The notes below the pieces were generated by a model that saw only the letters and a program-made list of their open reading frames with translations, had not been told where the DNA came from and ran no database searches. A program made the translations under genes and the position numbers. Below are positions 11,198-41,908 of a DNA stretch of 64,000 nt, piece after piece. The DNA is taken from the sequence record LR588166.1; one strand, written 5' to 3'. Every line of letters begins with the position of its first letter. The first letter of the stretch is position 1.

Positions 11198-14100
11198 TGT
11201 TTATAAGTTTTATTCCGCCTGTTGCAATGTTGATACGACTACAATCAAATCTACACATTATCTGTTTTGATTCTGTTTATAATAGTATAGTGTTTTGCGA
11301 TAAGGATTACGACGAAATACATTGCTGCTTATGGTAGCGTGTTTGCATTTAACGCAAAAACATGTTATACAGTATTGTTTGTTGAGTATTTTGACATTGT
11401 TGTTTCTAAAAATCTTTTATATAAAGGATTAATATGCATAATATATTTAAATTATCATATTGTACAAATATGTTTAAATTTAAAATATTATGGGATCAAA
11501 AAGTATACCTATGCTCGTTTATGTCATTGCGGTATACTACCCTATATATTTCTGCAGGTCGTATCAGATAAATGGTAACAAATATATTAGAATTAATGTA
11601 TGTATGTCACCATACATATAATATAACAACTAACGGCTACTATAACATTATCTTCTTAAATAAAGATAATAATATTATCTTTGTTTTGTATTAAAACAAA
11701 TGGGAATATTTCTCTTATCACGCAATACTTGCTACATTTGTGTTATACATGTCAGACGTATTGTATACAAGATTAAAATGTATGACAGACATGGCAATTA
11801 TGTGCGTACAATTAATGTTATCTAAGAACATATCAAATTATATAGAATTTTGTTGTATGTAATACTGTTTAATAATGGCATTAGATATTGATAAAATAAC
11901 ATACATTTCATTTAACTCATGCTATATATCAGTTAATTGTTTTAGTGTTATTATATATTATGAGTACGGTAGATTAATTTTATATGATGATACCCCCGGG
12001 CTTATATAAGAACGTATTCTACATACAGTATAATGTGCGTCATATCAGCATATATTATTTTGATGCATGCGAATGTAATATATTACAGGTAGAATGCAAT
12101 AATTTTCTTACTCTAACATATAAATTAAATGAAAAAACCAATAAGTAATATAGTTGAATTATCGCTTAATACGCACCAGTTTAATACCAATTATATAACT
12201 AGTGCTCATTGTTTAGTATTTTATAATGCGTCGTCATATCCTATACATTATGTTCGTTTACACACAAACAAGCGTTAACACTTATGTCGCCGGTATCAAT
12301 TCATAATATAGTTTGTATTCAACACTATCTTAATAGATGGTATACTAGAATATCCCCAACAGGGATTAATGTGTATTCAGATTCATATGTTAGAATTAGA
12401 ATAAATGTTCATAAATAAAAATATTATAAATCACGATATACATTATGATATGTTGCAGGTATCTTCGTGCGCACATAGAATAGATTCATCGCTATGTAGC
12501 ACATATCTATTGGCATGCATTTATAATAGTAATGAAAAAATTATTATAATTAGTGTTGCATATCTAAGATGAATGGCATGAAAGATATAATAGAATTTTC
12601 ATCGAATACATACGAAATATGTGCCAATACAGCAAGACTTAGAGATATAGTATACTACTCGATACTCATAAAGTCAAAAGACGGTCTTGCATTTTATATG
12701 GTAGACTCGTTTGCATATATAACATGACCAGTATCCTTGAATGTTCTTACAATACTTCTAATATTATGTTTCGTTTTTGTAAAAACAGTGACATTTTAGT
12801 TGTGAACTTTCTAAACAAAAATGCTAACATACATTTCATTGTAATAATTAGATACAAATAAACATATCGTTAATTACTAATACATAGGAGAGTAATAAAT
12901 GAATAGAGAAGCAAAGAAAAATGTTTCTGTATTTGTTATTCAGAATCATACTTTTAGAGTTCATGTTGTACGATATGATCCTGCGAGAATTTCAATATAT
13001 CTCTCACTTGTACATAATTGTGTTGCATCTTAAGAACTATATCTGTATAATGTAGGTTACATTTGCATGTATAGGATTATCTTTCATATAATATATGCTT
13101 ATTAACTATACGACATGTATTGAATTACTTTATAGTATTGTATGATTCGTAAAAATATAGTTCTAATATCACATAACACGTCAAAAATAATATTAGAAAG
13201 AAAAACAAGTAAAGTATTACGTGTTTCTATGTTTAAATCAATTGGAAAATACTACTACCATTATTATACGGCGTGTGGAAATATATAATGCAAGATCATC
13301 ATTTCACTACACTGTTGTATATGTCTAATCGTGCAGATAGAATAAAGATTTTTCGACAGCCTTCCTGTCTTATTGTATATATTAAGTCAGGTATGTTATA
13401 TATTAATAAACAATTTTTAAAATGTTAGAATATATAGATACTCTCAAATATAATTACATTTTAACTGTATGCAGCGGTGTAGAGTCTATATCATTTGAAT
13501 CATTTACTAGATCAGTAATATCAGTTTCCATAATATACAATAATATTACTATCTTTCCGTGTCAAACCACACGAACTATACTGTATGGTGTATAATCTTA
13601 TTTTTATTTCTTGTAATGTTTCTTTAATTAGTTTTTCTATTTTTAATAAAACATTTGAAGTTTATATTTATGGAAAAATGTTATTGGTAATTTATTATAC
13701 AGGACTGCGTATATGTTAGATGTATTGCTACGGTTCCAACGCAGAGTGGATACAATTAAGGTGGAGTTAATATGGCGTCACTTGCATTTTTATGAAAAAG
13801 CCGGCGAGGAGTTAGAGTTATTTCATATTATATTTCTGCCGCCCGATCACCGAAATATTAATTAACAAAAACAAGTTGTATTTTTCGGCATAAGAATTTA
13901 TGATTAAAGATACAAACAAAGAATCACCTATTATTAAAGAATTATATTTTATATTAAGATTGTAAGTAAAATAAAATACTTTTAGAATCTAAAACTAAAA
14001 TGATCGATTGGGTATTTAAATTGTCTGCTAGTTGCTACGAAATAGACGGACAACACAGTGAGTCAATAAGAATATATAATTCATATTGTCTTTTAGGAAC

Positions 14101-14472
14101 TATACAATGTTATTGTGCTCAGTTAAAAATAAATTTATATAAATTTTAATATTGTGGGAAGAATTCTTTTAAATAGGCATACTATATGAATGATCTATTA
14201 CAATACCAACTCACATTATGTTCCATATCTTTGCAGAAAGCTCGTTTTAAGTCAGGCAATGTGTATTACATTCTAATTGAACGTAACGACAGCGGTAGGT
14301 ATTCCCGAGATGTAAAAATACTTAAATGATATGCGTATATTTGTAATATCACAAAATTGCATGACTATCAGACTTTTTATCATACATATTTCATTAAAGA
14401 TGTAAATTATGATTCAATTTGTGTATTATATAAAACGAATAGCAGAATTGTAATACATCCGAGTTTTACAGT
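11197..14472 (+). other. run of roughly 20 coupled mini-ORFs (40-56 aa), mostly below the ORF-track cutoff
   Basis: Hand-translated examples: 11197 MFISFIPPVAMLIRLQSN, 12129-12278 MKKPISNIVELSLNT, 12284-12418 MSPVSIHNIVCIQH, MTSILECSYNTSNI, MIRKNIVLISHNTSKI, MLDVLLRFQRRVDTI. Confidence 0.6.
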
Positions 14473-14474
14473 AG

Positions 14475-14672
14475 ATGAATATATTCGATCTGTCTTATAA
14501 TTCTTCATTTATTTTGATGAAATCGAATAGAATATACATTAGTAATGATACCTATTATAATTATTCTGTAGGCGCTACATATGTATTACCTGCAATAACA
14601 AAATATATACATCAAACATTCTATGTAAACGCTGCAATATATAGATTTTTAGATACAGGTATACTAGTATGA
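14475..14672 (+). CDS. one-unit paralog family protein
   Basis: MNIFDLSYNSSFI. Confidence 0.65.
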   Translation: MNIFDLSYNSSFILMKSNRIYISNDTYYNYSVGATYVLPAITKYIHQTFYVNAAIYRFLDTGILV

Positions 14673-16330: not shown

Positions 16331-16610
16331 AAGTTATGCGCTGTTGCATACGTAAATACCTCCTATGTTGTTTAGATATGTCGATTCTGGTATAACCAGA
16401 TAGACCTAAGGATGATGCTAGTGATTCCTTAGTATTGTATATTCTAGCTGAGTATAAAGAGTAAGGGGCTTTATACAAATAACAATTCCCTAGGCAAGAT
16501 ATACCGCTCCGTTGTGCTGACGAGCATAATTTGCCCAGATACAGAGCACGTGACTGGTCTGAGGAGCATTTATATCAGAAAGGCAGACTTATGTTTGCCT
16601 TTCTTTTTGA
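16331..16610 (+). ncRNA. candidate structured sRNA (~280 nt) with its own promoter and terminator
   Basis: TTTACA-17-TATACT at 16296-16324; serial hairpins; terminator AGAAAGGCAGA/TTTGCCTTTCT-TTTT at 16577-16608. Confidence 0.5.
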
Positions 16611-16627
16611 GCAGATATTCTCTTATT

Positions 16628-16753
16628 CACTTCCTTATTCATTTCCTTATTCATCTCTATTTCATTTGTCACTTCCTTATTCATTTCCTTATTCATCTCT
16701 ATTTCATTTGTCACTTCCTTATTCATTTCCTTATTCATCTCTATTTCATTTGT
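16628..16753. repeat. 3 x 42-bp pyrimidine-rich tandem repeat
   Basis: Unit CACTTCCTTATTCATTTCCTTATTCATCTCTATTTCATTTGT at 16628, 16670, 16712. Confidence 0.9.
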
Positions 16754-16757
16754 TATT

Positions 16758-16883
16758 GCAAATAAGACTAATTCTTATTTGTGTTTGTAATTTCATTTGT
16801 TATTGCAAATAAGAATTAGTCTTATTTGCATTTGCAACGAAAAAGAATATGCAAATAATAACTATTCTTATTTGCATTTGCAC
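16758..16883. promoter_or_regulatory. cluster of three Fur-box-like palindromes
   Basis: TGCAAATAAGAATTAGTCTTATTTGCA at 16804-16830 plus two variants. Confidence 0.6.
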
Positions 16884-17254: not shown

Positions 17255-17959
17255 ATGTCCGTACATATCACTCGTCAACGTACCGACAAGCAGCACGTCC
17301 TGGCACTGGCAATCAACGGCGTGGTCATCGGCCAGACGATGGCTACTTACACCACCCCGAGCAAGCGCACCTGGTCGGCGACCGCCGAAGTCGAGCTGGC
17401 AGACGGCACTGTCGTTCAGTTCGAGCAGAAAGAAGTGTTCAGCGCGATCCGCATCACCCGCGAAATCGAGCAGGCGCTCGACGGCAAGGAACTGGCGGCC
17501 AAGTACACCCCGGAACCGAAAGTTCCCGGGCAGAAGGGTCCGAAACCGCTCACCGACGAAAGCCGGCTCAGCAACGCGATCGCGATCGTCAAGGCGGCCA
17601 TCACCCACACCGGCTTCGACGAAGCTACCCTGGTGTTCGACGGGGTCGACAAGGCCAACTTCGAGCAGAACAGCACTTCCGTCGGCAACAAGCTGCGTCG
17701 CCTGGGCTTCGTCTTCGAACTCGGCGCCGGCAAGGCGAACAGCGGCAAGGGCTTCCTGATCAACCGCAAAGCGCAGGCCGAGGCAGAAGCCGACGAACGT
17801 AAGGCCAAGCGCGAAGCCGAGAAGAAGGAACGCGAAGAAAAAGCGGCGGCTGCCAAGCGCGAAGCCGACGAACGTAAGGCCAAGCGCGAAGCCGAGCGCG
17901 CCGAAAAGGTCGCTGAAAAGAACGCAGCGATCACCGGGGCAGCACAGGAAAGCAAGTAA
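17255..17959 (+). CDS. VFSAIRI-family protein 1 with a second domain and Ala/Lys/Glu coiled-coil tail
   Basis: 234 aa, GAGG RBS, GC-rich host-like codons; homologous to 36150 and 42554. Confidence 0.85.
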   Translation: MSVHITRQRTDKQHVLALAINGVVIGQTMATYTTPSKRTWSATAEVELADGTVVQFEQKEVFSAIRITREIEQALDGKELAAKYTPEPKVPGQKGPKPLTDESRLSNAIAIVKAAITHTGFDEATLVFDGVDKANFEQNSTSVGNKLRRLGFVFELGAGKANSGKGFLINRKAQAEAEADERKAKREAEKKEREEKAAAAKREADERKAKREAERAEKVAEKNAAITGAAQESK

Positions 17960-20627: not shown

Positions 20628-20885
20628 ATGCCAAAACTTTACGTTAACAAAAAACATGATACCATTTATCTTCAATTAGATCATTTCTCATCTAATACTG
20701 TATCTCCAATTAATTATAACGAAGATGTAGAATATGTAATTGATAGGATCCGTAGTCTGCACAAATCCGGCTTCGGATTTAGTCATATGAATACTCTACA
20801 AGAATATCTTACGGCAAGAACAGAACAGGATAAGAAGTTTAAGCTTAAAGTAGAAGACTTCGAAGTAGTATCATTTAAGATTTAA
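20628..20885 (+). CDS. hypothetical protein
   Basis: 85 aa ORF. Confidence 0.7.
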   Translation: MPKLYVNKKHDTIYLQLDHFSSNTVSPINYNEDVEYVIDRIRSLHKSGFGFSHMNTLQEYLTARTEQDKKFKLKVEDFEVVSFKI

Positions 20886-20906
20886 AATTATACACAATCA
20901 AAGTAT

Positions 20907-20935
20907 TTGACATTTGATGTGTATACTAGTATAAT
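20907..20935 (+). promoter_or_regulatory. consensus sigma70 promoter
   Basis: TTGACA-17-TATAAT, exact. Confidence 0.85.
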
Positions 20936-20941
20936 TTACTC

Positions 20942-21690
20942 ATGCTGTCGTAACAGCTACTTTGTTCCATTCACAAGCAGCTCTGTTCCATTAGTGGATA
21001 TTGGTAGTAGAAACTATCCCCATCGTGCCCACAGTATTGTTCTGTTAGAGACAGATTAAAGCATACAAAAGTGGGTTATTTAAATTATGATTTTGGGTGC
21101 TGAAGTATAGTCGTTAGACAAGGATATGTCTAATGTTGCAAAGGACTATGCGAAACGTATTATATATCTTATCCGATATTAGATATGTAATAAAAGGATG
21201 AAGCTCTGGTAGAAACAGAGTGTAATTCTTGCTTGTATATCACACGGATATACAAAAGAATATACACACCAACTTCAGCATTGATGTAAATTTTCTAGCA
21301 TAGGTATATAACATCGATGTTCCGGGATTCATTGGAAACAATGAGAGAATGATGTAATCTGAGGAAAAAGGTCCCCGCCTCGTCCATATTACGAAATGGT
21401 TTTGAGTACTTATGCCCTCGTCCTATATTGGCATATGGGTTTTATATTTCTCCCGTAATTACGGGAGAATATAATTTCCTGAACCTACTTGGAAATGGAC
21501 GCTTCTGCTGTGCAAAGCACAGCATCTAAGGGCCTTCACCCTTACCGCTAAGAGCAAGAGCAAAAGCAATATAATTACAAATAAGAATTAATTATTGTTT
21601 AGTTTTATCGTAATGAATATGAAGATAAAAACTAAACAATAATTCACATGTAGCGTTAGCTACTGTGAATATCTACTATAGTATTAACCA
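20942..21690 (+). ncRNA. candidate large multi-domain structured ncRNA (~620-750 nt)
   Basis: ORF-free; more than 12 helices, nested long-range pairings, GAAA loop, perfect promoter. Confidence 0.7.
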
Positions 21691-21801
21691 TATATGTATA
21701 CAAGGGCATAATATGGCTGTTACTTGTTGACAATATGATATGTGTGTTACACTTCGTATATTAAATATACATTACAATGTTTTGATTATTAGGAACATAC
21801 T

Positions 21802-22389
21802 ATGTCATTTTCTTTGACTGCTGCTATTAATCGATACACTAGTCTAATAGAAGAAAATTTCAAAATAAATTATCTGAAGCATTTTGAGTCAGGATATATC
21901 TCATATAAATTACTAAGAAATAAAACATTCCTACATACTGAAATATCACATAGACTTGATTATATAAAGGTATTTACTTCTTATACATATGTAGAAAATA
22001 ATGTCAAATTAGATAAAAAATCACCTGTTGTACATTCGTATATTTCTACTACTGAATGCTCTAAATTTAGAGTAGGAGATATAAGAAGAATGTTTTACGA
22101 TTCAATACCTCGTGGAAATGTTTTTAATATTAAAGAGAATACTCAAGTTAGCTGGGCAACAGCTAATATTGGAATTCACGAGAATTCGTTTAATCTTAAT
22201 TATATTTCGAACAATAAGTATATTCGATTAGAAACAGGAGATATATTTGTTTGTATTAATGATAGTATGGTAAATGAACTACAAGAACATATGCATGTTC
22301 ATTCTATATGTACTAACAAAACAAAGAAGTTTTATGTAAGAGAAATTGATTTAAACATGCTACATTACAAAAAACACATTATGGAATAA
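21802..22389 (+). CDS. hypothetical protein
   Basis: 195 aa, AGGA RBS. Confidence 0.8.
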   Translation: MSFSLTAAINRYTSLIEENFKINYLKHFESGYISYKLLRNKTFLHTEISHRLDYIKVFTSYTYVENNVKLDKKSPVVHSYISTTECSKFRVGDIRRMFYDSIPRGNVFNIKENTQVSWATANIGIHENSFNLNYISNNKYIRLETGDIFVCINDSMVNELQEHMHVHSICTNKTKKFYVREIDLNMLHYKKHIME

Positions 22390-22950: not shown

Positions 22951-22980
22951 AGAAAGGGAATTATAATTCCCTTTCTTTTT
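22951..22980 (+). terminator. intrinsic terminator
   Basis: AGAAAGGGAATT-AT-AATTCCCTTTCT-TTTT. Confidence 0.8.
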
Positions 22981-23774: not shown

Positions 23775-24269
23775 GTGTTCGAGATGGAGCAAATAGTGAA
23801 TATGCGAGAAGTGACATTTCTTTCCGCAGTGGATGCCAGCAAGATCGAGACGCCGAGCAACGTCATCAGCATCGGCAGCAAGGGTGATTGGTATGCCTTT
23901 GCCTGCGATCACAAGCGCGTTCTGCGGCTGGAGTTTGATGACGTAGACGGATACGTGGGAAGCGATGGCTTTCGAGTGTTCAGCCACATTGACGCCAAGC
24001 AGATCCACGACTTCGTGAACGAGTGTGGTGATGAACCGATCATTGTTCACTGCCAAGCAGGCATGAGCCGATCCGCTGCGGTTGCCAAGTTCCTGGCTGA
24101 CAAGCGCGGCTACACGTTGAACCTGTCGAAGCCTTGCCTTGGAACCACGCAATTCTACAACCGCCACGTCTACGGAACGTTGAACCTCAACGACGCCGAA
24201 AGCATGAGCGCCTATTACGCAGAGATGGAGCTAGCCGACCGGCTGCGCGGCCATCCAAAGGAGTCCTAA
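23775..24269 (+). CDS. protein-tyrosine/dual-specificity phosphatase-like protein
   Basis: IIVHCQAGMSRS = HCX5R(S/T) P-loop; GC-rich. Confidence 0.85.
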   Translation: MFEMEQIVNMREVTFLSAVDASKIETPSNVISIGSKGDWYAFACDHKRVLRLEFDDVDGYVGSDGFRVFSHIDAKQIHDFVNECGDEPIIVHCQAGMSRSAAVAKFLADKRGYTLNLSKPCLGTTQFYNRHVYGTLNLNDAESMSAYYAEMELADRLRGHPKES

Positions 24270-24271
24270 TC

Positions 24272-24571
24272 ATGCCTGACATGAGAGAAGAGTTTGAAGC
24301 CGCAATCTTTGCGGAAGTGAATGAACAGCGGGCTGCTGAAGGTGAATTTGTCCTTCAGCATCCAGAAGGGCTATTTGCCCGCGATGACGATGGCTCCTAC
24401 TTGATCCGTTGGGTCAAGAGCGCATGGTGGGCCTGGCAAGCCAGCCGCGCAGCTCTGAGAGTGGAGTTGCCGAAACCTCACCCTGCATTTGAGTACGCAC
24501 CTAGAGCCAAGGTTTTCAATATAACTGACGTTGAGGTAGCCCTCCAGCAAGCCGGAATCGAGGTGAAGTGA
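24272..24571 (+). CDS. Pseudomonas prophage-type hypothetical protein
   Basis: AAGGAG RBS; MREEFEA...AWWAWQASRAALRVELP pattern. Confidence 0.8.
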   Translation: MPDMREEFEAAIFAEVNEQRAAEGEFVLQHPEGLFARDDDGSYLIRWVKSAWWAWQASRAALRVELPKPHPAFEYAPRAKVFNITDVEVALQQAGIEVK

Positions 24572-24718
24572 ATGAGAACGCCCATCTTCATCGGCGGATC
24601 AATTGGCATAGGAATCGCCTATCTGATGAATCCTGAATATCCCGCTATCGCGCTTGCAATGGTGTTTAGCGCGGGTACCTCATTGTTCATTCACTATCTA
24701 TCTGAGGTATGGCCATGA
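24572..24718 (+). CDS. small membrane protein (48 aa)
   Basis: Hand translation MRTPIFIGGSIGIGIAYL...; coupled at both ends. Confidence 0.6.
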   Translation: MRTPIFIGGSIGIGIAYLMNPEYPAIALAMVFSAGTSLFIHYLSEVWP

Positions 24719-24789
24719 CCGACCACGCAGAGCTGCGGAGGCTGGCTAAAGAAGTGATCCGAATTGAACGAAATGAGGATGCAGCATGA
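24715..24789 (+). pseudogene. truncated Ead/Ea22-like N-terminus (24 aa)
   Basis: MTDHAELRRLAKEV... then stop overlapping the next ATG. Confidence 0.4.
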
Positions 24790-25322
24790 GCATTGACTGG
24801 ACCAAGGCACCAGAGGGTGCGACGCACTACCAACCGGAATCACGCGGCTTCCATGCGGCATGGTTCCGACTTCAAGGGGGGAAGGCTCGCGAAATGTGGG
24901 TCGTGAGACCCAGCCGCGCGCTTGAGCACATCATCGATCCGACTGTCTTCGACGAGAGCATGCAGAACCTGATCGCCCGCCCCGTAGAAGCTGCCACCTG
25001 GAACGGCCAGGGTCTACCGCCGGTTGGCCTGATGGTGGAGTGGAAGGCAGGCCTTGATCACGACTGGCAGCGCGTAACTGTGCTTGCCTACGCCAATGGC
25101 GACGCGTGGTTTCAGCCCGAGGATGGCCCGTCTTTCATCGTCGGCAACCCGGCAAACTTCAGGCGTATCCGCACCCCCGAGCAGTTGGCCGCCGAGGAGC
25201 GGGAAAAGGCGATTAATCAGATGATTTCTGATGCTGGATACGTAGATCCGAAGATTGGCACATTTGTGGCTATGCGCAATCTCTACGACGCCGGCTACCG
25301 GCGCCGGGAGGAAGGGAAATGA
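24786..25322 (+). CDS. Pseudomonas phage hypothetical protein (MSIDWTKAPEGATHY family)
   Basis: Characteristic N-terminus and GLPPVG / RTPEQLAAEERE segments. Confidence 0.85.
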   Translation: MSIDWTKAPEGATHYQPESRGFHAAWFRLQGGKAREMWVVRPSRALEHIIDPTVFDESMQNLIARPVEAATWNGQGLPPVGLMVEWKAGLDHDWQRVTVLAYANGDAWFQPEDGPSFIVGNPANFRRIRTPEQLAAEEREKAINQMISDAGYVDPKIGTFVAMRNLYDAGYRRREEGK

Positions 25323-25585
25323 GCAGACTGACCGCTGAGCAAGCCCGTGACATAGCGCGAGCGAAAGACGATGTCGATACTATCCTCAACGACATCGCCA
25401 AAGCAGCCGCAGAAGGAAAGTACGTGTACACTACCCGCGCCTATGGGTTCGGCACAGGCGGCGGGCGGCGCAGCGACGCGATCCTCAAAGTGTTGCGTAG
25501 CCTCGGCTACGACTGTGCGGTGCATGCTGAGGGACGCCAGTCTGTTGACCTGTGGCTTGAAGTGAAATGGGGAGACAAGCCATGA
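25319..25585 (+). CDS. hypothetical protein
   Basis: ATGA overlap, GC-rich codons. Confidence 0.8.
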   Translation: MSRLTAEQARDIARAKDDVDTILNDIAKAAAEGKYVYTTRAYGFGTGGGRRSDAILKVLRSLGYDCAVHAEGRQSVDLWLEVKWGDKP

Positions 25586-25944
25586 CTGACACCAACGAAA
25601 TAAAAAAGCTAGCAAAACTGGCTACGCCGGGTCCGTGGTATGCGTCCTGGGAGGAAGGCGATGATATTGCATGGTCGAATCTGTTTCCTGTAATCCGAGC
25701 AGGCAATGGCGAAGTCGTGATCGGTAACGAAGGCTTTTACAGCGATCTGGACCAGGATAAGGCTAACGCCACTTTCTGTGCTGCTGCCAATCCCCGAGCC
25801 GTCCTAGACTTGCTGGACGAGAACGACAGACTAAAAAAGGAGAACGATGAACTTCGTCACCTTTGCTCCTGCGCTAAGCAATATAACCTCAGCATGACAC
25901 TGCGCAGAATGATTGACGCAGTCCTTAAAAGAGACAAGCCATGA
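25582..25944 (+). CDS. Ead/Ea22-like family protein
   Basis: LAKLATPGPW ... AAANPRAVLDLLDE. Confidence 0.8.
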   Translation: MTDTNEIKKLAKLATPGPWYASWEEGDDIAWSNLFPVIRAGNGEVVIGNEGFYSDLDQDKANATFCAAANPRAVLDLLDENDRLKKENDELRHLCSCAKQYNLSMTLRRMIDAVLKRDKP

Positions 25945-26129
25945 CCGACATTAAAAAGCTGAAGGAGTTAGCGGAACGGGCTACTCCTGGTCCCTGGTCT
26001 GCGTCTTGGAAGGAAGGCGATGACCATTTGGGGCGAATTGCTTACTTCGTGTCAACTGGTCAATACAACATCACAAAAGAAACAGTCTTCGACATAGTGA
26101 ATGTGGTTCCCGAAAATGTGTGCTCCTGA
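25941..26129 (+). pseudogene. second Ead/Ea22-like copy, short or frameshifted
   Basis: LKELAERATPGPW N-terminus, early stop, lacks ANP..VL.LLDE C-terminus. Confidence 0.45.
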
Positions 26130-26969: not shown

Positions 26970-27023
26970 CAGTATTGATGCTGATATAGACTATTTCAGT
27001 TTCTTGTATCAGCATCAATACTG
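26970..27023. repeat. perfect 17-bp inverted repeat
   Basis: CAGTATTGATGCTGATA / TATCAGCATCAATACTG. Confidence 0.8.
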
Positions 27024-29947: not shown

Positions 29948-30121
29948 ATAAATGCATAAACAGGTACTGTATAAAAATAAAGAAAGATTAGATTTTGTCT
30001 GTAATAGTTATATATTTTTCAATGTAATATTCTTCATTTTCATTGCATGCGTTACAAAATAGATCACAAAAAGTTTTAAAATTCAGTTTACAGCATGCAT
30101 AGTTTTACGTATTATAAACAC

Positions 30122-30620
30122 ACAAAGCAATACAGCATAACGCATTGTAAGCAACACTAAACGGGAGACACCGTCCCGCAAGCAGCCCGCCCGCGATGTT
30201 CGCGGGCTGCGGCAAACAGGTGTACAAGGTCTAGTAACGTGGAAGGCGCAGCATACCTTTCCTTAAATCGGAAATCGGTCAATGACGTACCTGCCCCTGG
30301 ACACTGCTAGACCTTGCTGCTACAAGCGGGACAGCTACAAAGGTACACTGTATGTATCTATGCTTTACCCCGCTTTGTAGCAGGTCTTAAAACGGTCTAC
30401 TGGCATATGCCTTAGTGCTAGTAGGAATCATTAACCTAAAACTATTATATGCTTCCTGGAGGTGAAGAGTATGCCGCCGCAGCATTAAATATACATTATG
30501 ATGATGATAATTATGAATGCCGAAACACCGCTTCGATTCGTTTAAAAGACAGATGTCTGAATCGAATGTTTTTGGGCAAAAAGGTCCCTTAGATGGGATT
30601 TTTTTGCGGCTGCTAACTAG
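30122..30620 (+). ncRNA. candidate structured ncRNA (260-500 nt)
   Basis: TTTACA-17-TATTAT at 30087-30115; GC-rich nested helices; no credible ORF. Confidence 0.65.
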
Positions 30621-36149: not shown

Positions 36150-36617
36150 ATGTCTAATGTAAGCATCCCTGCAGTAACGGTAGAGAATATCGGCACCCTG
36201 CGCATTGTGCGCACCGCTAACAAGGAGGTCGGAAGTGTGCTCGACCTAAAAGTTAACGGGGTAGTAGTAGGGCAAGCTTTCCCGCTCTACAGCACAAAAA
36301 CCCAGCGTAGCTGGAACGCGAGCATGCACGCTACCGTTAACGGCGTAGAGGTGCAGTTTGCACAGGAAGGCGTGTTCAGTGCAATCCGCATTGCACGGGC
36401 GTTCGAGGATGCAGTAAAGTATGCCGTTAGCAACGGCGAGCAAGGGCAACCCCTCCCCGCGCCGGCGGCGCAGTCCGATGCCCCGGCAACGGCAGAAGCG
36501 CAAGCAGAAGCCCCGGCGGCGCAGACCGAGGATGCGCCGGAGACCCCGGCAGCCGAAGCTAAGCCCGCCCGCAAAGGCGGCAGCAAAGGCGGCAGCAAGG
36601 GCGGCAGCAAAAAGTAA
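36150..36617 (+). CDS. VFSAIRI-family protein 2 with Ala/Pro/Lys/Gly tail
   Basis: TAGACA-17-TAAGCT promoter, GGAG RBS, ATG 36150; tail KGGSKGGSKGGSKK. Confidence 0.85.
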   Translation: MSNVSIPAVTVENIGTLRIVRTANKEVGSVLDLKVNGVVVGQAFPLYSTKTQRSWNASMHATVNGVEVQFAQEGVFSAIRIARAFEDAVKYAVSNGEQGQPLPAPAAQSDAPATAEAQAEAPAAQTEDAPETPAAEAKPARKGGSKGGSKGGSKK

Positions 36618-36630
36618 GCGCTGCTAACAC

Positions 36631-36745
36631 AGGAAAGGGGCAACTGCCCCTTTCCTTTTATGCCCTAGTTGTAAATGCAAATTAATCTTATTTGCATTTG
36701 CACAAGTCAATCTCCTGTTGCATTACTGCGGTAAGATGTTAGTAT
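36631..36745 (+). promoter_or_regulatory. terminator + Fur-like box + sigma70 promoter cassette
   Basis: AGGAAAGGGG-CAACTG-CCCCTTTCCTTTT, then TGCAAATTAATCTTATTTGCATTTGCA, then TTGCAT...TGtTAGTAT. Confidence 0.75.
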
Positions 36746-36785
36746 GTGCTTAGCAGTAACACATAACTAGCAGGAGCAATAGACA

Positions 36786-37034
36786 ATGGCTAAAGTATTG
36801 CATGTTAACAGCATCGGCAACATCGCCGAAGTGTTTACATCTGTAGACCTCGATAGTGCCTTGTTGCACGCAATCAAACGCTGTGCAACGATGGGCAAGG
36901 TTGAGGTTGTTGGTCCCAACGCTCCCGTGTTTGCTAGACACTACGACGCACTGACGGCGTACGACGTGCAGTGGCGCCTCGTTCCTCCGGGCTGCGGCGT
37001 TACCGTGTACGTCATTGCCGAAGACAGCAATTAA
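36786..37034 (+). CDS. hypothetical protein
   Basis: AGGAG RBS. Confidence 0.75.
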   Translation: MAKVLHVNSIGNIAEVFTSVDLDSALLHAIKRCATMGKVEVVGPNAPVFARHYDALTAYDVQWRLVPPGCGVTVYVIAEDSN

Positions 37035-37887: not shown

Positions 37888-38329
37888 CACAAAAAAGGAA
37901 GGGGCGCAAGCCCTTTTCTTTTGTCTGCAATTTCTGTGCAAATAAGAACTATTACAGTTGTGGTAAAAGCACAATGCAAATAAGACGCATTCTTGATTAG
38001 GCCTGATAATAAGTTCTTATTAACAGAAAAGAAACCGAATAAGAATAATTCTGAAAAAATAACCCTGCAGCGTAACACAAAGAGCTTGCAATTTGTAAGC
38101 CCTTTTTAATATGCATTTGTTAAGATTAGTTCTTATTTGCAATGATAATATCCCCGCCACGCAAATAAGAACTAATCTTAGAACAAATATTCACTTGATT
38201 TTTCTCCCAATATAGTGTATGTCTATATTAGATAAGATTAAGTCTTGTTTGCTTGTTACATTTTATATGTTGCAATGCTAAGGCAATGACAATATTATAT
38301 GTACAGCAACACAAAACAGGAGATATAAC

Positions 38330-40882: not shown

Positions 40883-41263
40883 ATGGCACTCATAGCATTA
40901 GTAGCAACCGCATATGACAAAGAAGGCGATAAGTTCGACTATGTTCGATATCTTAAAGCTCATATCAATTTTGTTTCTGCTCAAGATCAACTGAAAGAAT
41001 GGATCAAAAACAAAATTGATGCAAGTATAGCAGAAGTTAAAATCGGATTACGTGCAGAAATCGAAGTATTGGCCTATTTGGGAAACTATATAAGCCATAG
41101 TCAACGGATTATTAGTCCCGCTGGGATCATCATGTACATTGTTCTTGATGAGAAGTATGTTAATGAACTTCACGGTCAAATTTCTAATGCAATTGATTGT
41201 GAAGAAAAGAAACATGTAATAAAGAAAGAAGAAAACGTCACTTATATTGATTTTAAAAAATAA
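40883..41263 (+). CDS. hypothetical protein
   Basis: TTGACA-17-CATTAT promoter; AGGAG RBS. Confidence 0.8.
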   Translation: MALIALVATAYDKEGDKFDYVRYLKAHINFVSAQDQLKEWIKNKIDASIAEVKIGLRAEIEVLAYLGNYISHSQRIISPAGIIMYIVLDEKYVNELHGQISNAIDCEEKKHVIKKEENVTYIDFKK

Positions 41264-41456: not shown

Positions 41457-41536
41457 GACTAATATTATTCATTTGACAAAAAATAATAATTAAAAATATA
41501 ATAGCTTAGTGTATAACTTCCCATATTAGGCTAATT

Positions 41537-41908
41537 ATGAAATTTGTTATTGCTGCTATTGCATTGTCTTTGTCCACACTAGTTTCTGCAGAATCTATTT
41601 CTGAAGTTAAGATAACTAAAGAAACATGCCTTACACTTCTGGAATTATCTAAGATTCATGTTGATATGGTAGTAAATGAACATATGAATGCAATACAAAT
41701 TGCATCTCATATGGATATTGTATCTAATTTGTATAAGAATAATAATAGTAAATGGCTTGCATTCTTGCAGGCTCAAGCAAATATTTCAAAATTAATTGAT
41801 GACGTATATGAGTTTTCATCTACTGAAGAAAGAAAGATTATTCCTCTAGCCATATTTAACGGTTGTATGGAAAGAGTTGGTAATACTTTTGAAATATATA
41901 AGAAATAA
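41537..41908 (+). CDS. secreted/periplasmic protein
   Basis: Signal peptide MKFVIAAIALSLSTLVSA; Cys pair. Confidence 0.75.
   Translation: MKFVIAAIALSLSTLVSAESISEVKITKETCLTLLELSKIHVDMVVNEHMNAIQIASHMDIVSNLYKNNNSKWLAFLQAQANISKLIDDVYEFSSTEERKIIPLAIFNGCMERVGNTFEIYKK

Follow-up and report, generated by a model that had tools for sequence, protein, structure and literature searches.

The window analysed here is a stretch of 64,000 nucleotides (nt) from the genome of vB_PaeM_MIJ3 (MIJ3; LR588166.1), a PA5oct-like Pseudomonas jumbo phage of the genus Wroclawvirus with a genome of 288 kb; window positions equal MIJ3 positions minus 186000. We examined a gap of 916 nt at 20886-21801 (MIJ3 206886-207801), hereafter locus A, in which an initial annotation had placed a candidate large structured non-coding RNA (ncRNA). 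The gap is 97.9-99.8% identical to its counterparts in PA5oct, PAC2, Cassandra, Ettore, Paride, Deifobo, Callisto, phi30-2 and phi30-3, all members of Wroclawvirus, and no match was found in phage records beyond this genus. The PA5oct equivalent, 12810-13720, lies between gp049 and gp050 within the 39-kb terminal repeat. Neither PA5oct nor MIJ3 carries any annotation in the gap; the records of PAC2, Cassandra, Ettore, Paride and Deifobo list three to four automatic open reading frames (ORFs) of 30-55 amino acids (aa) there.

The sigma70 promoter proposed for this RNA, an exact TTGACA-17-TATAAT, was confirmed at its position (Table 1). Perfect TTGACA/TATAAT pairs occur twice in the window, compared with 0.2 expected by chance. 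Both hexamers at locus A were invariant in all genomes; spacer site 20926 and positions 20938-20939 were variable. The absence of ORFs of 60 aa or more, described earlier for about 850 nt, likewise held for the whole of 20886-21801, and the approximately 860 nt 3' of the promoter contained no credible ORF. The longest ORF in the gap is 50 aa, uses a TTG start and begins within the -35 box. The second perfect hexamer pair in the window, at 41473-41502 with an 18-nt spacer, lies just upstream of the ORF at 41537-41908.

The predicted minimum free energy (MFE) of 20940-21700 was -221 kcal/mol, compared with -168 ± 5 kcal/mol for dinucleotide shuffles (z = -10.05), so that the segment passed the comparison with shuffled controls that the initial annotation had put forward. 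The shuffle score overstates how exceptional the fold is, as a GC-corrected comparison with real 300-nt windows of the same genome, among which locus A was the top scorer, gave z = -3.5. GC content is 33-39% across locus A and 25-30% in the flanking genes. The plus strand folded with 21 G.U pairs at -220.5 kcal/mol and the minus strand with 12 such pairs at -209.6 kcal/mol, and wobble-type changes fit pairing on the plus strand only. No internal repeats beyond chance were found within the locus A RNA.

Selection was assessed in nine complete phage genomes aligned over 3.9 kb, with gp50 excluded from the rates for flanking genes. In the block 20942-21700, 18 of 759 sites were variable (2.4%), and in its core (21074-21500) 1.4%. 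The flanking genes varied at 10.8% of third codon positions and at 3.3% of positions 1+2; the difference between the block and third codon positions was significant (Fisher p = 3.8e-11). The short intergenic pieces on either side of the block varied at 10.7% and 14.9%. The conserved block begins at the predicted transcription start and stops near 21700. Its slower evolution and its limits therefore indicate that the region is functional, and the limits are consistent with a transcript from this promoter. Directly 3' of the RNA, gp50 (21802-22389) is the most variable gene nearby (15.6% of sites), with 20.4% of first codon positions variable and 16.8% of third positions, a pattern that suggests diversifying selection or recombination.

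The MIJ3 genome was reassembled from pieces and compared with locus A by BLAST. The segment 20973-21105 recurs at MIJ3 271070-271198 (locus B, 83% identity) and at MIJ3 153387-153509 (locus C, 78% identity), each within a large unannotated gap of MIJ3 (gaps of 1.5 and 1.8 kb). Both copies follow a promoter, a perfect TTGACA-17-TATAAT at locus B (MIJ3 270887-270915) and TTGACA-17-TAAACT at locus C (MIJ3 153297-153325), with invariant hexamers and variable spacers as at locus A. An exact 34-mer is common to all three loci (20995-21028; MIJ3 271089-271122; MIJ3 153409-153442). Locus A is a member of a three-copy family found in every Wroclawvirus genome; neither this paralogy nor the shared 5' module figured in the initial annotation. 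The 34-mer left a mark on public assemblies: every Logan assembly, from at least seven independent samples, breaks at exactly 21000 because the exact 34-nt repeat exceeds the k-mer size of the assembler, which we take to be k = 31. ENA scaffolds continue through this position. A physical genome end or heterogeneity was rejected as the cause of the breaks, since the repeat explains them.

The shared segment contains a module of seven helices, termed D1 (Table 1). Within it, two stretches are identical in all three paralogs, 20995-21028 (34 nt) and 21075-21100 (26 nt). A covariance model built from locus A alone (R1) detected exactly three copies in the 288-kb genome, with scores of 148, 117 and 96 bits and a next match of 16 bits. 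A model built from all three families (R2) also returned exactly three copies, and scores from the two models ranged over 143-148 bits for A, 117-131 bits for B and 96-120 bits for C. In alignment A4 (22 D1 sequences, 13 distinct; 440 pair cells), all cells (100%) formed standard pairs compared with 92.6 ± 0.8% in shuffles (0/500), and both-side changes affected 8 pairs and 37 cells compared with 11.9 ± 3.3 cells in shuffles (0/500) and at most 6 in slid controls; this alignment had been fitted to the model, and the cells stand for sequences from about three lineages rather than for independent events. The compensatory pairs between paralogs fell in P2 (four), P3 (two) and P4 (two), with H0, H1, P1 and P1b invariant. 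The position of a covarying arm between two identical stretches argues against gene conversion as the source of their identity and for direct selection on those sequences. In all three paralogs variation peaks in the 4-nt loop of H0, with three alleles at 20994 in A and variation at position 207/209 in B and 115/117 in C; the H0 stem and its surroundings are invariant.

A full-length column alignment of A, B and C by MAFFT was rejected because it was misaligned everywhere outside D1, and the comparison beyond D1 was therefore made at the level of whole helices. Nine further structural elements occur in the same order at all three loci, with different stems and retained loop or junction motifs. 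From 5' to 3', the shared order is an AAGGA-loop hairpin, a hairpin, AAAGGAUG, a GU(A/U)GAAA-loop hairpin, a hairpin, ACCAAC, a hairpin, UUCCGG(G/C)A, a GAGG..CCCG..CCUC hairpin, the 3' AT-rich hairpin and a terminal hairpin. The counterparts of S2a in B and C are different stems that retain the AAGGA loop, and the S2b position holds a hairpin in A, B and C with unrelated sequences. The multibranch closing helix is invariant within family A, and locus B has, by reading, GCUG/CAGC at the equivalent place. Beyond the RNA body, all three loci have an AT-rich hairpin (15-20 bp) and then a second hairpin; the AT-rich hairpins of B and C have 15-16 bp, a common 32-nt loop and different arms. Locus B is also longer at its 5' end, by about 150 nt, and contains large insertions. 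Of 8 changes at sites predicted to pair in family C, 6 were wobble-compatible on the plus strand, a count subject to some ascertainment bias because structures were predicted from one member. Folding of both loci exceeded that of shuffles (z = -3.77 for B and -3.07 for C). The DNA 3' of locus C, at an orientation switch (MIJ3 154100-155040), contains direct repeats, for example two copies of CATTTTGTGATTTTAATTTAAA.

Table 1. Features of locus A and its predicted RNA, in window coordinates
Feature	Position	Strand	Remarks
Sigma70 promoter TTGACA-17 nt-TATAAT	20907-20935	+	exact consensus; predicted transcription start ~20942
Predicted mature RNA body, ~630 nt	20942-21580	+	3' limit by analogy with ncRNA004 RNA-seq ends
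5'-terminal hairpin GCUGUC-GUAA-CAGC	20944-20957	+	GNRA-type loop; invariant
D1 module, 117 nt, 35 bp	20985-21101	+	common to three paralogs
D1 hairpins H0 and H1	20986-20998; 21003-21018	+	
D1 helices P1, P1b	21019-21022/21094-21097; 21023-21026/21087-21090	+	
D1 helices P2, P3	21027-21032/21071-21076; 21034-21040/21061-21066	+	
D1 helix P4	21041-21045/21051-21055	+	
Multibranch domain	21099-21279	+	closing helix GCUGAAGU (21099-21106) / ACUUCAGC (21272-21279); MFE and alignment folds
S2a, AUAGUC/GACUAU around UUAGACA-AGGAUA-UGUCUAA	21107-21149	+	loop AAGGA, CsrA/RsmA-like ACAAGGAU
S2b, 12-bp AU-rich hairpin	21158-21192	+	immediately 5' of AAAGGAUG; loop site 21179 variable
Junction motif AAAGGAUG	21193-21200	+	common to all three paralogs
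S3a, hairpin GCUCUG-GUAGAAA-CAGAGU	21203-21221	+	loop GU(A/U)GAAA kept in A, B, C
S3b, hairpin AUUCUU..UUGUAUAUC-ACACG-GAUAUACAA..AAGAAU	21225-21261	+	
Single-stranded motif ACCAAC	21268-21273	+	kept in A, B, C, just before closing-helix 3' strand
S3c, hairpin immediately 5' of UUCCGG motif	21280-21318	+	in A, B, C with unrelated stem sequences
UUCCGGGA motif, then GAAA-tetraloop hairpin UCAUUG-GAAA-CAAUGA (21329-21344)	21320-21344	+	conserved motif
GAGG...(C/G)CCCG...CCUC hairpin	21361-21381	+	C-rich loop; common to loci A, B, C
9-bp GC-rich hairpin UUCUCCCGU-AAUU-ACGGGAGAA	21448-21469	+	terminator-like, poor U tract
Hairpin UGCUGUGC-AAA-GCACAGCA	21506-21524	+	loop hypervariable: AAA, GAA, UUC or UUU
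Seven consecutive A-R-N triplets AAGAGCAAGAGCAAAAGCAAU	21550-21570	+	Hfq distal-face-type; locus A only
AT-rich hairpin, ~20 bp, 14-nt loop	21590-21644	+	candidate processing (RNase III-type) or termination signal
Terminal hairpin AUUCACA-GUAGC-GUUA-GCUAC-UGUGAAU	21642-21670	+	second hairpin after AT-rich hairpin at all three loci

All of the helices that the initial annotation had listed within locus A were found in their places, including the closing helix of TGCTGAAGT (21098-21106) with ACTTCAGCA (21272-21280), S3b (in DNA letters ATTCTT..TTGTATATC/GATATACAA..AAGAAT, 21225-21261), TCTCCCGT/ACGGGAGA at 21448-21469, TGCTGTGC/GCACAGCA at 21506-21524 and TAAGGG/CCCTTA at 21527-21544. The proposed pairing of GTCCAT (21382) with ATGGAC (21495) is present in MIJ3, and two metagenomic variants disrupt it with a U.U mismatch. 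Likewise, S3b is partly contradicted within family A, where 21239 forms U.U in most genomes and 21247 forms C.A in one. A long-range helix suggested by the alignment fold (20997-21011/21672-21685) was set aside, because paralog C ends, by RNA-seq, before the corresponding region and B and C show weak complementarity.

Additional Wroclawvirus variants from Logan and ENA assemblies gave a few informative sites. Pair 21030/21073 changes from C-G to U-A in phi30-3 and one Logan contig. At 21508/21522, Deifobo has A-U in place of C-G, and its relatives show a C.U intermediate. Sites 21055 and 21061 switch between U-A and U.G, and about ten further changes fall in loops. These two compensatory pairs compare with 0.3 ± 0.5 in shuffles (9/500) and none in slid controls. 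The evidence from within locus A is suggestive and thin, as most helices never vary. Compensatory changes among homologs, which the initial annotation had named as a check, were found both within the genus and between paralogs. Two loops differ between phages by their own reverse complement: AAA and TTT/TTC at 21514-21516 of locus A, and TCT and AGA at MIJ3 271951-271953, in the loop of the locus B hairpin AUACACUGC-UUCUA-GCAGUGUAU. Both swaps look like inversion by template switching at a quasi-palindrome.

Locus C corresponds to PA5oct ncRNA004, a 'putative lncRNA' (long non-coding RNA; EST35_0353, 246116-246734, 619 nt) in an RNA-Seq-based annotation (Lood et al. 2020, PMC7318152). Read coverage was the sole basis of this annotation, for which neither a structure nor relatives were reported (PMC7318152), and the literature text searched made no mention of relatedness among loci A, B and C or of extra copies of ncRNA004. 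A discrete RNA is documented for locus C only, and sigma70-type promoters are present at all three loci. In PA5oct, early transcription is almost exclusively from the Watson strand, which is the strand of locus A, and production of the phage is sensitive to rifampicin. Locus A lies among the terminal-repeat genes gp34-gp105, for which high early transcription is reported. Dependence on the host RNA polymerase, the early-strand context and the consensus promoter together predict immediate and strong transcription of locus A. Between its promoter and gp50 no canonical intrinsic terminator was found; the first clear one on the plus strand is at 22951-22976, after gp51. By analogy with the ends of ncRNA004, the stable locus A RNA probably ends shortly before the AT-rich hairpin.

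Rfam was searched in two modes. With gathering thresholds, no family was matched at locus A in the window or at loci B and C, and only tRNAs were returned; in E-value mode, 20800-21900 gave four chance-level matches to unrelated families, none of which reached E = 0.1. The three loci are therefore not ROOL, GOLLD, OLE, raiA, intron, RNase P RNA, tmRNA or 6S RNA. The initial annotation had suggested a ROOL- or GOLLD-class RNA or a new class; the first part of that suggestion fell with the Rfam result and the lack of adjacent tRNA genes, and the second, a separate class, stands. No tRNA genes were found in the 64-kb window, and the tRNA cluster of the phage (12 genes, MIJ3 174.8-179.0 kb) is about 28 kb away from it. 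A group I or II intron or a small self-cleaving ribozyme was likewise rejected, as there was no Rfam match and gp49 and gp50 are complete and mutually unrelated ORFs.

No homologs beyond Wroclawvirus were found by exact-word scans of IMG/VR, JGI metagenomes and GTDB or by searches with neighbouring proteins; diverged relatives may be missed, because the scans need an exact 18-22-mer. The word GGTCCCCGCCTCGTCCAT gave one chance match, on a contig of 69% GC, and GGGATTCATTGGAAACAATGAG had none in IMG/VR or JGI metagenomes. The word GGTAGTAGAAACTATCCCC was absent from IMG/VR and GTDB genomes and had one chance match, to a coding sequence, in metagenomes. Seven matches to AAATTATGATTTTGGGTGC were all rejected by the covariance model. 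Among the neighbouring proteins, gp49 and gp50 had no relatives in IMG/VR, and gp50 and gp47 had only genus-level matches in a collection of 5.8 billion proteins.

Taken together, these results suggest that 20907-21700 is an autonomous gene for a large structured ncRNA of about 630-760 nt on the plus strand, one of three paralogs, to which we assign a probability of roughly 0.6. Purifying selection, compensatory changes and the RNA-seq-based lncRNA annotation of paralog C all support the RNA gene first proposed for this gap. Its autonomy is indicated by locus C, which lies about 950 nt from the next gene, and by the unrelated proteins that flank the three loci. The family is a new, previously undescribed one within the known kind of large ornate phage RNAs of unknown function. 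We envisage that host RNA polymerase with sigma70 would transcribe the locus A RNA upon DNA entry, that the transcript would be trimmed or terminated near the AT-rich hairpin at 21590-21644, and that the folded RNA would act in trans. D1 combines two hairpins with a helix that is interrupted by a large, AU-rich internal loop, and has invariant stretches with a covarying arm between them. Its core might therefore be a sequence-specific docking site, with the RNA acting on a protein of the host or the phage as scaffold or decoy; this is the mechanism that we consider most likely, although only tentatively. From the conserved ARGGA sites, RsmA/RsmN would be one candidate partner.

Several observations weigh against this interpretation. 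Transcription of locus A itself is inferred, and the authors of the PA5oct study, who added ORFs and ncRNAs from RNA-seq, left the 911-nt locus A gap unannotated. The paralog ncRNA004 is a minor transcript, with 0.08, 0.03 and 0.02% of phage reads in the early, middle and late phases, respectively (PMC7318152). The lack of a canonical terminator before gp50 makes read-through likely. Changes at 21239, 21247, 21499 and 21669 break predicted pairs, and most of the predicted locus A helices outside D1 rest on thermodynamics and on a comparison of paralogs by helix rather than by column; the fitting of A4 to the model structure and its few lineages, noted above, belong here as well. Finally, GGA motifs are not enriched.

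The most interesting rival is an RNA-primed origin, in which the strongly promoted, folded transcript would form a persistent RNA-DNA hybrid in the AT-rich DNA just downstream and be processed to prime replication, following the logic of ColE1 RNA II or the phage T4 R-loop origins. As in those systems, a structured RNA of several hundred nt would be made by host sigma70 polymerase towards AT-rich DNA, and several copies are present per genome, as are multiple origins in T4. The 288-kb genome has three dispersed copies, each with a strong sigma70-type promoter and with AT-rich DNA and a long perfect palindrome on its 3' side, and beyond locus C lie about 950 nt of non-coding DNA that is AT-rich and contains direct repeats. 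DNA polymerase I-like genes are annotated in the genome, and an RNase H-like protein was reported in the PA5oct paper (PMC7318152). Loci B and C lie exactly at minus-to-plus switches of gene orientation, which are local minima of cumulative GC skew. However, the skew simply tracks gene orientation throughout the genome and was rejected as origin evidence, and a third switch, at about 10.5 kb, has no copy. Locus A does not fit the strand-switch pattern: it is embedded in a block of co-oriented genes, with gp50 only 100 nt further on, and, unlike ColE1 RNA II and the T4 transcripts, has almost no downstream non-coding DNA. A primer role would also leave the invariant D1 core and the conserved hairpin-loop motifs unexplained, no origin has been mapped in these phages, and the likeness to ColE1 and T4 comes from sequence context. 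We therefore consider an origin function rather unlikely.

A second possibility is that the RNA titrates a host post-transcriptional regulator, either RsmA/RsmN through GGA motifs or Hfq through A-R-N triplets. Two ARGGA sites are kept in A, B and C, one in the AAGGA hairpin loop of S2a and the other the AAAGGAUG junction motif; the S2a sequence ACAAGGAU is, we presume, close to the CsrA consensus from SELEX (systematic evolution of ligands by exponential enrichment). With seven A-R-N triplets near the 3' end and a strong promoter, locus A thus shares features with RsmY/RsmZ/CsrB and CrcZ. Known sponges such as RsmY, RsmZ and CsrB, however, carry many sites within 100-400 nt, whereas the locus A RNA is far larger, has a far lower motif density and has no GGA array in D1. 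There were 11 GGA motifs in 759 nt compared with 8.2 ± 2.1 in shuffles (p = 0.14), just two of them in hairpin loops, and 5 ANGGA motifs compared with 2.7 ± 1.5 expected (p = 0.12). Neither motif was enriched, which leaves the RsmA/CsrA sponge role suggested in the initial annotation from its ANGGA motifs weak. The A-R-N tract was rejected as a family feature, being absent from B and C. Alone it carries little weight, because runs of at least six such triplets are common in this A-rich genome, with 30 on the plus strand genome-wide. Moreover, the strongest constraint falls on D1, which has no conserved loop GGA. A sponge function thus appears unlikely, and we hold it similarly improbable that the family is a new large-RNA class with an activity of its own, such as a self-assembling RNA-only particle like those of ROOL or GOLLD, or a ribozyme-like or protein-free machine around the D1 core that the phage would deploy within the first minutes after infection, or, as a variant, the structured primers of three RNA-dependent origins.

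We also considered whether the region is a cis-acting 5' leader of the gp50-gp51 mRNA that controls its stability, processing or translation. The lack of a canonical terminator between the promoter and gp50 and the weakness of any promoter in 21701-21801 would agree with such a role. However, the genes that follow paralogs B and C are unrelated, and locus C gives a discrete 619-nt RNA in RNA-seq, well separated from the next gene. No homology was found among the proteins flanking the three loci, which argues against the leader of a paralogous gene family. Conservation ends near 21700, the last 100 nt before gp50 vary at 14.9%, and gp50 itself, at 15.6% of sites, is the most variable gene nearby. 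A leader function is accordingly very unlikely.

It is hardly credible that the region is no RNA gene at all and consists of tiny protein genes, an element that works as DNA (for instance an array of protein-binding sites), or a decayed gene: although some records annotate the three to four small ORFs mentioned above and PA5oct lists four such tiny hypothetical ORFs at locus B, the 50-aa ORF begins inside the -35 box and the others oppose the early-transcription strand, the compensatory and plus-strand-only wobble changes indicate selection on RNA pairing, and conservation is too high for a decaying gene. Translated matches between paralogs were confined to nucleotide-identical stretches and involved several reading frames of both strands, and aligning D1 requires gaps whose lengths are not divisible by three (by reading, 1 nt in B and 5 nt in C relative to A); together these patterns indicate that the shared sequence is not coding.

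Among known RNAs, ncRNA004 is the closest to the locus A RNA. The two share D1 (96-120 bits), the order of elements, a TTGACA-17 promoter, the 3' AT-rich and terminal hairpins and a similar length, but they occupy different loci (PA5oct 246 kb, MIJ3 153 kb for ncRNA004) and are unrelated in sequence outside the conserved islands. GOLLD and ROOL resemble it in size (about 600-800 nt), in dense multi-domain pairing, in being encoded by phages and in having no known function. ROOL and GOLLD form RNA-only multimeric cages. Unlike them, locus A has no Rfam match even at E = 10 and lies about 28 kb from the tRNA cluster, and its family is confined to one phage genus with three paralogous copies per genome. 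To our knowledge, very few bacterial or phage ncRNA classes of more than 500 nt have a conserved architecture, and each such class that we know of has so far proved to be a ribozyme, the core of a ribonucleoprotein or an RNA assembly of an unexpected kind.

PA5oct is already in use as a laboratory model, and its public RNA-seq data and standard host PAO1 ease study of the family. Three diverged paralogs supply built-in covariation and natural variants, and the consensus promoters ease expression. A role in host take-over is suggested by the position of locus A in the terminal repeat, which is early and doubled. The results also correct the annotation of these genomes, in which automatic pipelines place tiny hypothetical proteins here and only one of the three loci appears as an RNA in the curated PA5oct record. 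Wider interest is limited by the finding of the family only in Wroclawvirus.

Two other PA5oct ncRNAs map to the window; according to the PA5oct paper, ncRNA1 and ncRNA2 have no similarity to known sequences (PMC7318152). ncRNA001 maps to 16351-16586, with a TTTACA..TATACT promoter and a clean intrinsic terminator at about 16577-16613. On its 3' side (16630-16760) a 42-nt unit rich in CTTCCTTATTCAT is repeated in tandem about three times, followed by nested AT-rich palindromes at 16750-16876. ncRNA002 maps to 30134-30588 at 92% identity, has a GC content of about 47-50% in a genome of 30% GC, and is bounded by a promoter-like site (30089-30117) and a terminator (about 30577-30607). It was rejected as a family member, as the D1 covariance models do not match it and it is unrelated.

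Elsewhere in the window, 2.9 kb at 11578-14475 contain no ORF of 60 aa or more, and PA5oct annotates about 20 consecutive ORFs of 40-55 aa there (gp012-gp031). GC-rich islands (54-63%, compared with 30% for the genome) occur at 17601-17900, 23800-26000 and 36401-36900; the first and last are also among the best-folding 300-nt windows. These islands may be acquired genes or further structured elements. Long AT-rich intergenic hairpins with arms of 17-32 nt and loops of about 17-24 nt were found at 26970-27023, 38121-38180, 40964-41020 and 16750-16876. They are similar in form to the hairpin at 21590-21644 and may represent a common processing or termination signal of the early region.

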